DNA of 62,996 nt, filler included, from Olpidium bornovanus S191 (lineage: Eukaryota; Fungi; Olpidiomycota): assembly GCA_017911155.1 (NCBI GenBank). It is 30 parts of 30 records of this genome, joined end to end, with 100 filler letters (N's around TTAATTAATTAA, not from the genome) between each part and the next. Parts side by side here need not be neighbours in the genome. Positions count along the whole stretch, not along the records: positions 52,040 to 53,399 come from JAEFCI010009725.1; 29 more parts are not named here. One strand, written 5' to 3'. Under the pieces are notes generated by a model. The model was not told where the DNA came from. It was given only the letters and a program-made list of their open reading frames with translations, and ran no database searches. Position numbers and translations under genes: made by a program. This document shows positions 2,830-53,399 of the stretch, piece by piece. Numbering within the stretch: the first letter of the stretch is position 1; every line of letters starts with the position of its first letter.

Positions 2830-3444
2830 CATGCAGAGTGTGGGGGGAAAACACTGGGTTCTCAAAAAAATCCTCGACCCTGAAAGTTTCAAAAAAAAAA
2901 ATAGGGGGTCCGCGCGCGCGCATCGCAAAAAATCGCAAAAAAAAAAACCTCCGCGCGCAAAAAATCGCAAATAAAACAAAGATCCGCGCGCGCGTTTCGA
3001 AAAAATCGCCAAAAAAAAAACGCTTCGAGCGGCAAAAAAATCGCAAAAAAAAGGATCCGACGTTTTGCTTCTCCCCCCCGCTCCCCCTTTCTTCCTTCAG
3101 CGATAGAAAGCGCCGTTTTGGAGAGCCATTTTTCGCGTTCCATGTTACTTTGGTTCCCCGGTTTCGTTTTTCGGTGGACGTCTTTCGTTAAATCTCGCCG
3201 ACGTTATCCGGTCGCCCCCGACCGGGCGCCGTTCCCAGCGCGGCCCCGCGGTTATTTTTTTGCTGCGCAGCCGGTATCGTAGACGGGCGAGCCGAATATA
3301 TACATATGTGTGCAGCCCGGCCCGGCGCGGGCCGAAATCAACGAGAACGAGCGCTTCCGAACGCCGCTATGACGCGCCGGCGGCACGTTTCGACTCGGCC
3401 GGGACACACTTCCCCCACCCAACCTGCCGATCCCTTCCGCCGCT

Positions 3445-4462
3445 TCACGCGATGTTTGCCAGGTAGTCGCGGATTTCGGCCGGCTTCAGCTTGCGGAATT
3501 GCGGTATCGAGTCCTCTTCGAGGGGCGCCGCGGCGATCACGCCGGGTCCCCTCGTGTCGCTGATGATGCCGATCTCGATCGACGTCTCCGTCATCTGCCC
3601 CTCGAAGCCCTCCTTCAGCGTCAGTATCGCCGTGTGCACCGCGTCTTCGATCTCCATGTCGGGGCTGAACCTGAATCGAGTCCCGGAAACCGCCGCGAAG
3701 CGAGCCGCGCGTTAAAAAAAAAAAAAAAAAAAACGAGCGCCGCAGTCACGCTTTCCCGCACCGCGTCGCGCGTGCCGCCGAAAACGATTATCAACGCACC
3801 GCTTCTCCAGGAAAGTCTTCGCGTTGACCATGTTCTTCCCGATGGCCGACGCCTTCCACGCCCAGTAAGACCCGGACGGGTCGACTTGGTACAGGGCAGG
3901 GCCGTTATCGTCGTAGCCGGCGACGAGAAGAGAAACTCCGAACGGCCGGACGCCGCTGCGCGCGCGCCGGGCGAAACGTGGAAATTGCGCGAGCGAACGC
4001 GCGAGAGGAGAAAGGGAAAAAAGAAAAAAAAAAAAAACAGGGCTCGCGGTAAGCGGGATGTCGGCAAGGGGAAAGCCTCCGCGTCAGGGAATTCCCGGCT
4101 TTCGGTCACGCATAAATGCGCAAAATTGAACCGGGGGGGGGGGGTTGTTGGTCCCTTTCTTTTTCATTTCTTTGAGAGTAAGTGCTTGGCCGTCAGACCT
4201 ACGCACCCGCTCTGCGTGTATTCCTGCATCACGGCGGCGACCTCCTTGACGAGCTGGCCGACGGGGGGGGTCTCCATGTAGACCTGCTTGTAGGCCTGCA
4301 CCGCCTTCCGGGCCTTGTCAATGAGGACTCGGGCGTCCGGGCCCATCCCGGAGTACACCAGGCCGGCGTTCCTGGACACGGGCACGACCTTCTCGAGCGT
4401 GGACTCGTCGATCAGCGGGGAAGTCGTCTTCTTCTCGGTGACGATCACCACCCCGTTCGTCG
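3445..4462 (-). CDS. PRE8: 20S proteasome subunit alpha-2, 5'-truncated; exons 4207-4462, 3800-3955, 3445-3670
   Basis: [80 protein letters not shown] introns join in frame. Confidence 0.97.
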
Positions 4463-51939: not shown

Positions 51940-52289
51940 NNNNNNNNNNNNNNNNNNNNNNNNNNNNNNNNNNNNNNNNNNNNTTAATTAATTAANNNNN
52001 NNNNNNNNNNNNNNNNNNNNNNNNNNNNNNNNNNNNNNNGAGGGAGGGGGGAGGGCAAGGAAGGGAGGGGGAGAGGGAAGGGGGAGAGGGAAGGGGGAGG
52101 GGGGGGGGAGCCGCACGAATGCGCAGAAACGTCAGCGTTTTTTTTTTTTTTTTTTTTTTCCTTGAAAAGGCGCGCGCGGGAAACAAAAACAAAAACGTGA
52201 ACGCCCTTTTCCTTCTCTTCCCCCGTCGTTGTCCGAGAGGCAAACGCTCCTTCCGACCCTTCCTCGGTGGTGTGGGCGGCCGCTAAGCG

Positions 52290-53399
52290 ATGAGGACCCT
52301 CACTCTCGGCCTGCTGCTTACCGCCGGAACCCTGACCGTGCTCGGGGTCGGGTACGCCGTGCACTTCGACAGGAAACGGAGAAAGGACCCGACCTTCAGG
52401 AAGCAGCTCCGTGAGTTGCAGAGATGGGTGGCGGCCCCCATCACCTTCTATCCCCGGCGTGCGGCGGAGGTGGCGGGGCGCGTCTGCGAACGCCGTCGCG
52501 ATGTGCCTCCGTCGCTGCCCTGCTTGTTCCTTTTGGTTCGGCGCCTTGTTGCCAGTTGCTAATTTCTGCGGTCCGACCGACGTGCGGCGGTACGAAACCG
52601 CGCAGGGCTCGATAAAAAGAGGGCCGCGATGGCAAAGAAGGCTTCTGAAGCGCATGAAAAGGAGGCCGCCGCGGCCGCGGTTAGCAGCCTTCTCAAAGCC
52701 GCTGAGGCGGATCAGCTTCCCCACAGCATCGAGGACAGGGAGGCGTACTTTATGCAGCAAGTTGGCGAGGGCGAGGCTCTCGCTGCTCAGAGCGTCTCTT
52801 CGCCGGCAGCGCTTCAGCAGGCCGCCCTTTGCTTCTACCGCGCACTCAAGGTTTACCCGTCGCCGGTCGAGCTTGTAATGATTTACCAGAAGACTCTCCG
52901 GAAGGAATTGTTCGATCTGGTTATGGCGATATTTTCGGCAGAAATGAAGAAGAAGCAAGACGAGTATTACGAGTCCTTCCCGCCGCGCGACATGAATGTT
53001 TTCGCCAAAGAGTTTGAGGCTGGGGTTTCCGCTGACGGGACCAAGATTTTGCGCAAGGGACTTACGGCGGCTCGCGAACTGAAACCGGGAGAAGTTATCT
53101 ACACCGAGAAACCCGTTGTGTCCTGCCTGCAGCCCGCGCTGGAGGTGTGTGCGGGATGAAAATCTGGAGTTGCGCTGTTGGATCGCGTACTGGGTTGTCC
53201 TTATGGTTGGCCTGATTAATTCGCCTGTTCTCTCATCTAACGCTACCTTGTTCGAAAGGGCATATTCTGCTCTCATTGCATGAGACAATTGCCCGACGAC
53301 GCGTTCGAGATCATCGATGCCGCGGAAGTGGAACTGACCGCGAATAGCGGAGTGCTGGTTGGTAAATCCGAGCTGGCCGAACCCGAAGCCGACCAGTCC
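52290..53399 (+). CDS. TOM20: Tom20 (MAS20 domain) fused to a SET/MYND (SMYD-like) domain, 3'-truncated; exons 52290-52410, 52606-53144, 53259 onward
   Basis: TM plus GYAVHFDRKRRKDPTFRKQL; EAYFMQQVGEGEAL...AALCFYRALKVYPSPVELVMIYQKT; then, in the same exon, RKGLTAARELKPGEVIYTEKPVVS, and FCSHC in the next exon. Confidence 0.9.

Follow-up and report, generated by a model that had tools for sequence, protein, structure and literature searches.

Tom20 fused in frame to a SMYD-like SET/MYND module in Olpidium bornovanus, a probable member of an old fungal family

The locus described here raises the question of whether the Tom20 import receptor of Olpidium bornovanus continues, within one gene, into a SET/MYND module of the SMYD type and, if so, how such a protein would act at the mitochondrial surface. 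The window, that is, the whole stretch of DNA that was analysed, comprises 62,996 nucleotides; the locus occupies a 1360-bp contig (positions 52,040 to 53,399, JAEFCI010009725.1) of a metagenome-assembled genome from non-axenic material, for which the species name is a label (PMC7865070). The contig contains three plus-strand exons (52290-52410, 52606-53144 and 53259 to beyond 53399) and covers the 5' part of the gene, about 266 codons. The features are listed below.

52177-52289, plus strand: 5' untranslated region; the X1 and X3 contigs start at 52177, and the ATG is at 52290
52290-52410, plus strand: coding part of exon 1, Tom20 N-terminal signal-anchor helix and basic patch (Pfam MAS20 1-29)
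52411-52605, plus strand: intron 1, 195 nt, GT..AG, phase 1 (joint 52410->52606 in the X1 and X3 contigs)
52606-52925, plus strand: first part of exon 2, stalk helix and MAS20 receptor core with the invariant ALKVYP...IYQKT motif (Pfam, PDB, model)
52926-52994, plus strand: exon 2 linker, the last Tom20 helix prolonged, with the conserved KKQxxYYxxFPP, without stop and without intron (alignments, model)
52995-53144, plus strand: last part of exon 2, predicted SET-N strands of a split SET domain (collinear alignment, predicted strands)
53145-53258, plus strand: intron 2, 114 nt, GT..AG, phase 0 (joint in the X1 and X3 contigs, cut +2)
53259-53399, plus strand: exon 3, cut by the contig end, first MYND CxxC knuckle followed by an acidic insertion (translation, Podila match)

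The exon layout of the preliminary description, in which an anchor, a MAS20 core and a SET-N segment are followed by a next exon that opens with a MYND-like CSHC, is retained, with the end of exon 2 corrected to 53144. Exon 2 (52606-53144) is a single open frame that runs from the Tom20 core through the linker into SET-N; since no stop codon and no intron interrupts the passage from Tom20 to SET, the fusion is hard-wired in Olpidium. The deposited protein model P0001 is wrong: its exon 1 is in the wrong frame and its end is an in-frame stop within intron 2. An antisense ORF of 434 codons (51984-53288, minus strand) was also considered and rejected as a chance frame in GC-rich DNA; no Pfam family matches it, and the GT..AG introns place the gene on the plus strand.

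The Tom20 half is readily recognizable in the individual exons, which were searched one by one. Exon 1, a hydrophobic run followed by a D-R-K-R-R-K basic cluster, matches Pfam MAS20 positions 1-29 (E 9.3e-9) and is 50-68% identical to the N-termini of fused orthologues by BLASTP. Exon 2 residues 3-106 match MAS20 positions 33-131 of 132 (E 6.5e-24; 84.9 bits against the PF02064 cut-off of 27 bits), and the same exon matches Chaetomium Tom20 (PDB 9i7s_K) at E 2.8e-17. Tom20 proteins of model organisms (about 145-250 aa) end soon after the core, whereas in the Olpidium ORF the core is followed by the linker, SET-N and the start of a MYND finger. From the conservation of the core, we infer residence in the TOM complex and presequence binding.

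The sequence downstream of the core is assigned to SET because of its collinear homology to full-length proteins and the structure prediction. In the linker motif KKQxxYYxxFPP, F and P are invariant and Y is nearly invariant (alignments A1, A2 and A4), and the segment that follows is collinear with SET-N of full-length MAS20+SET proteins. Exon 3 opens at 53259 with G-I-F-C-S-H-C-M-R-Q-L, identical in 8 of 12 positions to residues 220-231 of the Podila orthologue, its first MYND zinc knuckle; a long acidic insertion comes after this first CxxC, and Spiromyces (P0017) has a comparably long insertion between the first CxxC and the remaining MYND. Thus, of the SMYD order SET-N then MYND, the Olpidium contig contains an aligned SET-N with predicted strands and only the first MYND CxxC. 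A Pfam search of the fragment called neither SET nor MYND, because only the first ~50 residues of the split SET lie on the contig. The 3' half (SET-I, SET-C, post-SET) was not recovered: a word search with exon 2 led to nothing beyond the 258-aa partial model already deposited, searches with profiles of the full-length and the SET-only alignments found no Olpidium protein covering it, and a metagenome scan for it found only two basidiomycete-like loci, at 56% identity. When the tail was compared with ESM Atlas features, all leads stayed below threshold (0.85); one bears the name 'SET domain-containing protein', but we do not count these leads as evidence.

The preliminary description had asked for the fusion transcript to be confirmed, and the confirmation comes from two contigs of 1820 and 1796 nt (runs X1 and X3, from two studies, presumed to be RNA) that span all three exons and continue beyond SET-N. 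Both introns are exactly removed in these contigs, the exon 1 donor between 52410 and 52411 is in use, the junction matches the metagenome-assembled genome with one synonymous difference, and the contigs reach 906 and 882 nt past 53399. The lengths of these spliced contigs fit a product of 500-570 residues, rather than the roughly 180 of a Tom20. The Olpidium Tom20-SET/MYND fusion is therefore transcribed as one spliced RNA, with the source runs presumed to be RNA. Raw RNA-seq runs with the same species label (X21, X24) yielded zero reads and have no bearing on expression. In a Glomeraceae orthologue, an mRNA of 1630 nt (L007) ends in poly(A) and encodes 482 aa in one unbroken ORF.

Structure prediction covered Olpidium exon 2 and one full-length orthologue. 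The AlphaFold model of Olpidium exon 2 (pLDDT 93.7) has helices at residues 2-33, 41-60, 66-82, 86-96 and 99-123, the last of which spans the linker, and strands at 131-140 and 146-154. The preliminary description required a SET fold from structure prediction; one was obtained for the full-length Podila orthologue (pLDDT 93.3, pTM 0.84), whose Foldseek matches include SMYD3/2/1 (E about 1e-14) as well as Tom20 9i7s_K (E 3e-7). In VIA comparisons, the SMYD match is to the catalytic lobe, with model residues 162-487 set against SMYD2 residues 5-278 (Z 22.7 over 263 aligned residues), and 134 of 135 residues are superposed on Tom20 of the TOM holo-complex (9i7s_K) with Z 16.6. The Podila residues equivalent to Olpidium SET-N superpose on SMYD2 from residue 5. 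The C-terminal TPR-like domain of SMYD proteins, which caps the substrate cleft, is absent from the orthologues: the Podila model stops at the equivalent of SMYD2-278, and in alignment A1 nothing follows post-SET in the orthologues except, in some, an acidic tail of low complexity.

The Olpidium segment aligns end to end, at about 45-49% identity, with more than 90 full-length MAS20 + MYND + SET proteins, which, together with the spliced contigs and the lack of a stop at the junction, upholds the in-frame fusion on the plus strand. In about 50 representatives of 450-870 aa, query residues 2-179 are matched in one stretch (Jimgerdemannia: 49% identity over 170 residues, E 6e-51), and in 93 fetched proteins (430-760 aa), the Tom20 core is followed by the YYxxFPP linker within 70 residues. 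Domain searches of ten relatives found MAS20 plus SET in all ten and zf-MYND in five. The SET part exists, in nearly every case, only together with Tom20: nearly all matches of a SET-part search better than 1e-60 carry MAS20, save a few Logan ORF pieces, and the next best match is at 1e-27. The fusion is found in nearly every non-ascomycete fungal phylum and is catalogued in databases, with the full set of domains in no fewer than eight fungal lineages and with holders among chytrids, Blastocladiomycota, Zoopagomycota, Kickxellomycotina, Mucoromycota, Glomeromycota, Mortierellomycota and Agaricomycetes; there is no fused member from Ascomycota among the more than 90 full-length relatives. The long MAS20+SET entries of basidiomycetes mentioned in the preliminary description do exist (Auricularia, Botryobasidium, Lentinula, Coprinopsis, Rhizoctonia, Tulasnella and Suillus), but the distribution is far wider than that description implied. 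A quick tree recovers phylum-level clades, with Olpidium as a lone deep branch, in agreement with the expectation of vertical descent. Judging from these sequence relationships, the Olpidium gene is an apparent orthologue in an old fungal Tom20-SMYD family.

The architecture itself is not new, so the earlier suggestion of an undescribed system does not hold. A 2022 survey in J Fungi devotes one sentence to 'Group 25' SET genes with MAS20 upstream of SET that are absent from Ascomycota (PMC9692433). The architecture and the absence from Ascomycota are as in the fused family, of which the Olpidium gene is a further member; the survey does not tie MAS20 to Tom20 or mitochondria and includes no Olpidium, structure, motif census or isoform analysis (PMC9692433). 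We found no functional work on the MAS20-SET fusion in the literature.

Taken together, we consider it probable that this is an Olpidium Tom20 fused to a SMYD-type split SET/MYND module that would most likely act on non-histone clients at the import site; of the architecture and topology we are more confident still, to the point of little doubt. The N-terminal helix would anchor the fusion in the outer membrane with the rest in the cytosol, as in every Tom20, and because of this anchor the SMYD module would face the cytosol. A rigid helix would hold it at the mouth of the TOM channel, beside the groove that binds presequences, where it could act on incoming precursors or on the Hsp70/Hsp90/NAC-type factors that deliver them, via SAM-dependent lysine methylation and/or MYND docking of proline-rich (PxLxP-type) motifs. 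That the substrates are import-related is a tentative proposal, held at somewhat less than even confidence. Doubtful, and more speculative still, is a broader scenario, in which the ancestral fungal Tom20 was a receptor joined rigidly to an active SMYD methyltransferase and MYND docking site at the TOM mouth, marking or recruiting precursors or their escorts (Hsp70/Hsp90, NAC), a module that was lost in Ascomycota, and in which Agaricomycetes tune the ratio of plain to fused protein by keeping or removing an intron that encodes the Tom20 tail.

On whether the module is an enzyme, the motifs of the orthologues point in both directions. HSCxPN, the SET-C Tyr/Phe and the post-SET CxCxxC are intact in most lineages, namely, chytrids, most Blastocladiomycota, Zoopagales, Kickxellales, Basidiobolus, Glomeromycota and Mortierellomycota. 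In Mucorales, Harpellales, Paraphysoderma and Bifiguratus, HSCxPN and the post-SET motifs are degenerate or lost, so that some lineages can do without activity; in the fused family, the canonical NHSC usually has another residue in place of its Asn. The strongest rival reading takes the Olpidium protein to be a Tom20 with a catalytically dead SMYD-like scaffold, in which the MYND finger and the SET fold serve as a docking surface only. Mucorales and Harpellales, which have retained the fusion and often MYND without HSCxPN and the post-SET zinc site, provide a precedent, and the general lack of conservation of the NHSC Asn as well as the long acidic insertion after the first MYND CxxC in Olpidium fit the same reading. 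Against it, the three motifs are kept in most deep lineages, Spiromyces with its similar MYND insertion has NHSCEPN and post-SET, and Olpidium SET-N is as well conserved as in the intact clades. We regard the dead scaffold as an unlikely but serious alternative, and lean slightly towards an intact catalytic site in the Olpidium copy, the SET-C half of which lies beyond the contig.

Far less probable is that the main product is a short Tom20, with the fusion arising to a minor extent by read-through or as an alternative isoform, a situation that Agaricomycetes seem to show. Auricularia, Mycena, Steccherinum and a soil metagenome contig all carry the canonical acidic Tom20 tail, with its stop, in the 'intron' that separates the core from the linker exon; the GTAAGT donor of this intron is read as Val-Ser. 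An Auricularia-like RNA contig, in which the neighbouring introns are spliced and the tail intron is retained, encodes a 221-aa Tom20, and Steccherinum is annotated as two genes 287 nt apart. The Agaricomycete locus thus appears to encode both the short Tom20 and the fusion via alternative splicing, and this layout, with its tail-bearing intron, is the reason why genomes are annotated with one gene, two genes or a truncated one. In Mucorales, short Tom20 proteins are encoded by separate paralogues (P0250, P0089). In Olpidium, however, a single exon spans the junction, uninterrupted by a stop or an intron, and the only Olpidium RNA contigs seen (from runs presumed to be RNA) represent the fused, fully spliced form.

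Slightly less probable again is the idea that the anchor merely stores a chromatin or cytosolic methyltransferase, the SMYD part of which would be freed by proteolysis in response to some signal and act elsewhere, for example, on histones. Some members carry the automatic UniProt name 'Histone-lysine N-methyltransferase SET5', yeast Set5 acts on histones, and the release of membrane-tethered regulators by cleavage is an established principle. In the models, however, the linker prolongs the last Tom20 helix as a conserved, rigid helix rather than forming a flexible, cleavable spacer, and a pTM of 0.84 over the whole chain suggests that both modules function as a unit. Finally, an artefact, either an assembly chimera or a gene-model error joining unrelated neighbours, might be suspected from a 1360-bp contig of a metagenome-style assembly with an incorrect deposited model (exon 1 frame, end in intron 2), but is hardly credible given that the junction is a continuous ORF in one exon, is repeated with one synonymous difference in contigs from two other studies, and recurs collinearly in more than 90 orthologues from many phyla.

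To our knowledge, the mechanistic knowledge of fungal Tom20 comes entirely from Saccharomyces, Neurospora and Chaetomium, that is, from one phylum without the fusion. Were the SMYD module active, import in most fungi would be coupled at the outer membrane to lysine methylation or MYND recruitment, a layer of import regulation that, if real, is not known from any current model. The family is large and includes tractable hosts, such as Mortierella, Coprinopsis, Basidiobolus and Blastocladiella, and the Agaricomycete locus offers what appears to be a compact case of alternative splicing with dual coding. For Olpidium itself, the gain is smaller: the family acquires a hard-wired member from a lineage that is pivotal for phylogeny, and an incorrect gene model on deposit is put right.

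Besides 'Group 25', the protein can be compared with three known systems. With Tom20 of Chaetomium thermophilum, other fungi and animals, it has in common the signal anchor, the basic patch, the stalk helix and the receptor core with ALKVYP...IYQKT; the ascomycete and animal proteins reach a stop 20-60 residues past the core, after a short, mostly acidic tail, whereas the last helix of the fusion enters a SMYD module of more than 300 residues. With human SMYD2, SMYD3 and SMYD1, the fused orthologues share the order SET-N, MYND, SET-I, SET-C, post-SET, with sequence matches at SET-N/MYND and SET-C/post-SET down to E 3e-12; unlike the human proteins, the fused family lacks the C-terminal TPR-like domain, usually has the NHSC Asn replaced and is predicted to be tethered to the membrane via Tom20. 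The third comparison, with yeast Ctm1, a cytosolic SET-domain enzyme that trimethylates apocytochrome c prior to import, is one of analogy, with no homology claimed: as is proposed for the fusion, Ctm1 works through a SET domain, outside mitochondria, on a protein that is bound for them, but it belongs to the Rubisco-LSMT-like SET group and is soluble, with neither a MYND finger nor a fusion to an import receptor.

The fusion of Tom20 (MAS20) with a SMYD-type SET/MYND module, which the preliminary description had claimed for Olpidium, is genuine: it is supported by in-frame collinear homologues, by spliced contigs from the runs X1 and X3 and by the predicted structure of an orthologue, and is confirmed as expressed and ancient. 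The gene lies on one complete contig of 1360 bp (window 52040-53399) from an assembly of non-axenic zoospore material (PMC7865070), with the following parts, the exons being taken from reading the sequence:

52290-52410, plus strand: coding part of exon 1
52411-52605, plus strand: intron 1, GT..AG, skipped in the X1 and X3 contigs
52606-53144, plus strand: exon 2
53145-53258, plus strand: intron 2, GT..AG at cut +2, skipped in the X1 and X3 contigs
53259 to the contig end (53399), plus strand: exon 3

One contig each from X1 (1820 nt) and X3 (1796 nt, another study) aligns to this piece; both start at 52177, lack exactly 52411-52605 and 53145-53258, and extend 906 and 882 nt, respectively, past 53399. 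The precise removal of the introns implies a spliced origin, although X1 and X3 are only guessed to be RNA runs. At about 1.8 kb, and with its ATG at position 114, the RNA has the length expected for a protein of 500-570 residues rather than for a Tom20 of ~180 residues. Because no intron lies at the junction, the Olpidium fusion is constitutive, barring polyadenylation within exon 2. The contigs of both runs differ from the MAG by a synonymous G>T at 53024 (GGG to GGT, Gly), which suggests a strain difference. Two raw RNA-seq runs labelled as the same species gave 0 reads in total and have no bearing on expression.

Compared with the spliced contigs, which give the corrected gene structure, the model (52229-53159) of the deposited protein P0001 ([quoted passage not shown]) is wrong: it translates exon 1 in a different frame and, for that reason, is without the membrane anchor, its acceptor differs from the one used in the RNA contigs, and it stops inside intron 2. 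An antisense ORF of 434 codons (51984-53288, minus strand) that spans the whole gene has no Pfam match and is dismissed as a product of chance in GC-rich sequence. The contig is of low complexity at its 5' end (52040-52170), where a G/A-rich run of GGGAGG-type repeats (about 52040-52110) precedes a stretch of ~30 T (52139-52160); the RNA contigs start (52177) just 3' of the T run, and reads seem to be cut at 52040-52171. This stretch may be a promoter-proximal homopolymer or a plain assembly break.

The Olpidium exons were searched and folded one at a time. The Pfam MAS20 profile aligns with exon 1 over its positions 1-29 (E 9.3e-9) and with residues 3-106 of exon 2 over 33-131 of its 132 positions (E 6.5e-24; 84.9 bits, the cut-off being 27), with the invariant core motif F..ALKVYP.P.EL..IYQKT intact in the alignments; among solved structures, exon 2 best matches the Tom20 chain (9i7s_K, E 2.8e-17) in the Chaetomium thermophilum TOM holo-complex. 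Pfam calls no domain on exon 2 residues 107-179 or on exon 3, as expected given that just the first ~50 residues of the split SET domain are on the piece. An exhaustive search of representatives returned 404 relatives, the best ~50 of which (450-870 aa) give a single collinear match of query residues 2-179 to their residues ~40-220; 10 of the 10 relatives scanned carry MAS20 and SET, and five of these zf-MYND as well. Across the junction, exon 2 is 49% identical to a Jimgerdemannia protein over 170 residues (E 6e-51). The family alignment A1 runs from the anchor and MAS20 core through a conserved KKQxxYYxxFPPxxMNV linker to SET-N and MYND, followed by a helical SET-I, SET-C with HSCxPN and post-SET CxCxxC. 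Exon 3 opens with 12 residues that match the Podila protein at its first MYND knuckle, right after which Olpidium has an acidic insertion; Spiromyces has a comparable insertion of ~90 residues at the same place, with the remaining MYND, NHSCEPN and post-SET all present.

A SET fold, the lack of which was to count against the fusion, is indeed predicted, in its full version for the Podila orthologue P0009. The AlphaFold model, built from 53 aligned sequences (mean pLDDT 93.3, pTM 0.84), retrieves SMYD3, SMYD2 and SMYD1 in Foldseek at E ~1e-14 and Tom20 9i7s_K at E 3e-7. With VIA-align, its residues 162-487 superimpose on SMYD2 5-278 (Z 22.7, rmsd 3.7 Å, 263 residues aligned) and residues 18-153 on Tom20 22-155 (Z 16.6); unlike SMYD proteins, the model is without the C-terminal TPR-like domain. 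In Olpidium exon 2 folded alone on alignment A4 (pLDDT 93.7), the last Tom20 helix (99-123) continues unbroken across the linker and is followed by strands 131-140 and 146-154 at the SET-N start.

Homologue searches trace the fusion from chytrids to Agaricomycetes. It is present in Chytridiomycota (Entophlyctis, Phlyctochytrium), Blastocladiomycota (Allomyces, Blastocladiella, Catenaria, Sorochytrium, Paraphysoderma), Zoopagales (Piptocephalis), Kickxellomycotina (Coemansia, Spiromyces, Mycoemilia, Dimargaris, Tieghemiomyces, Ramicandelaber, Smittium, Zancudomyces, Furculomyces), Basidiobolus, many genera of Mortierellomycota (two paralogues being common), Mucorales and Glomeromycota, and other Mucoromycota (Umbelopsis, Endogonales, Bifiguratus, Calcarisporiella). 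The basidiomycete entries mentioned in the preliminary description exist in Agaricomycetes (Auricularia, Botryobasidium, Rhizoctonia, Tulasnella, Lentinula, Coprinopsis, Suillus). The database searches found the fusion in no Ascomycota, and matches in Pucciniomycotina, Ustilaginomycotina, Malassezia and Wallemia were all short. With the SET part alone as query, nearly all matches better than 1e-60 carry MAS20, the exceptions being a small number of Logan ORF pieces, and the match that comes next is at 1e-27; this SMYD subfamily therefore occurs only with Tom20. In a quick tree of the exon-2 region, the phylum-level clades are recovered and Olpidium is a lone branch, which fits old vertical inheritance with later losses. 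P0203, a UniRef entry labelled Anthurium amnicola, is 89% identical to the Glomeraceae transcript protein P0204 and 79-82% to Funneliformis proteins, and almost certainly comes from an arbuscular-mycorrhizal fungus that contaminated a plant transcriptome. Two members of the family's database clusters, P0157 (Dimargaris cristalligena, named Elongator subunit elp2; 1892 aa) and P0169 (Podila verticillata; 951 aa, with PF02902), are much longer than the others and have unrelated domains, probably because neighbouring genes were merged into their gene models.

Other lineages appear to have alternative isoforms. In Auricularia L004 (~3100-3700), the “intron” removed by the fused model, between the core end ...LTTLD and the micro-exon VKNRGE, followed by DYYESFPP, contains the classical, conserved acidic Tom20 tail and its stop. 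A related Auricularia RNA contig, L005 (329-1842), has two upstream introns and a small downstream one spliced out and retains the junction intron, thus encoding a Tom20 of 221 aa, the SET frame lying downstream. Steccherinum L006 (4540-5200), annotated as two genes with 287 nt between them, has a consensus GTAAGT donor exactly at ...MD|VS... and an in-frame micro-exon plus GYYDMFP; Mycena L001 (6388-7103) and the soil metagenome contigs L002 (1742-2400) and L003 share the intron-tail layout. Agaricomycete donors (GTAAGT/GTGAGT) are translated as Val-Ser at the tail start; the “DVS” with which the Tom20 tails of Agaricomycetes begin is thus the translated 5' splice site. Because the stop-bearing tail lies inside the fusion intron, annotations differ: a locus may appear as one fused gene, as two genes or as a truncated hybrid (P0004 in Mycena, for example). 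Short “Tom20” models of Gigaspora and Mortierella come from reading through an intron at this junction; in one Glomeraceae fungus the fused mRNA is real, given that its contig L007 (1630 nt) is poly(A)-ended with an uninterrupted 482-aa fusion ORF. Upstream of the Tom20 locus, both Auricularia and Steccherinum have a gene for an AAA-ATPase in head-to-head orientation (L004, 432-2371, minus strand; L006, 1572-3699, minus strand), a conserved local synteny.

The motif census covers orthologues, the Olpidium piece ending (53399) before SET-C. HSCxPN, the SET-C Tyr (Phe in some) and CxCxxC are intact in Mortierellomycota, Glomeromycota, Endogonales, Calcarisporiella, Zoopagales, Kickxellales, Dimargaris, Basidiobolus, most Blastocladiomycota, one chytrid and Agaricomycetes; catalytic and post-SET motifs are degenerate or lost in Mucorales, Harpellales, Paraphysoderma and Bifiguratus. 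In Mucorales, genuine short Tom20 proteins (P0250, P0089) exist as paralogues, 53-62% identical to the fused ones. Of the motifs singled out at the outset, NHSC and the catalytic Tyr, HSCxPN and Tyr/Phe mostly stand among orthologues; the canonical Asn of NHSC is mostly replaced family-wide.

A single polypeptide joins the anchor, receptor core, rigid helical linker and SMYD catalytic lobe, with cofactor and zinc motifs kept in most orthologues. Tom20 has its N-terminus in the membrane and the remainder in the cytosol; SMYD proteins act on non-histone substrates, Hsp90 being a substrate of SMYD2, and MYND fingers bind PxLxP motifs, e.g., in skNAC. By the topology of Tom20, the SMYD module would be cytosolic, beside the presequence groove, where, judging from SMYD biology, it might methylate and/or dock import clients or the escorts of these. 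Some clades have lost the catalytic motifs and kept MYND, which suggests that docking is at least part of its role.

A full-text literature search, with subscription journals outside it, found no functional, structural or import-related work on the fusion, in agreement with the preliminary description. The one relevant paper on MAS20 together with SET (PMC9692433) already catalogues the family, so the architecture itself is not undescribed; the Olpidium gene, the copy of which lacks its 3' end here, is a new member of this catalogued, functionally unexplored family.
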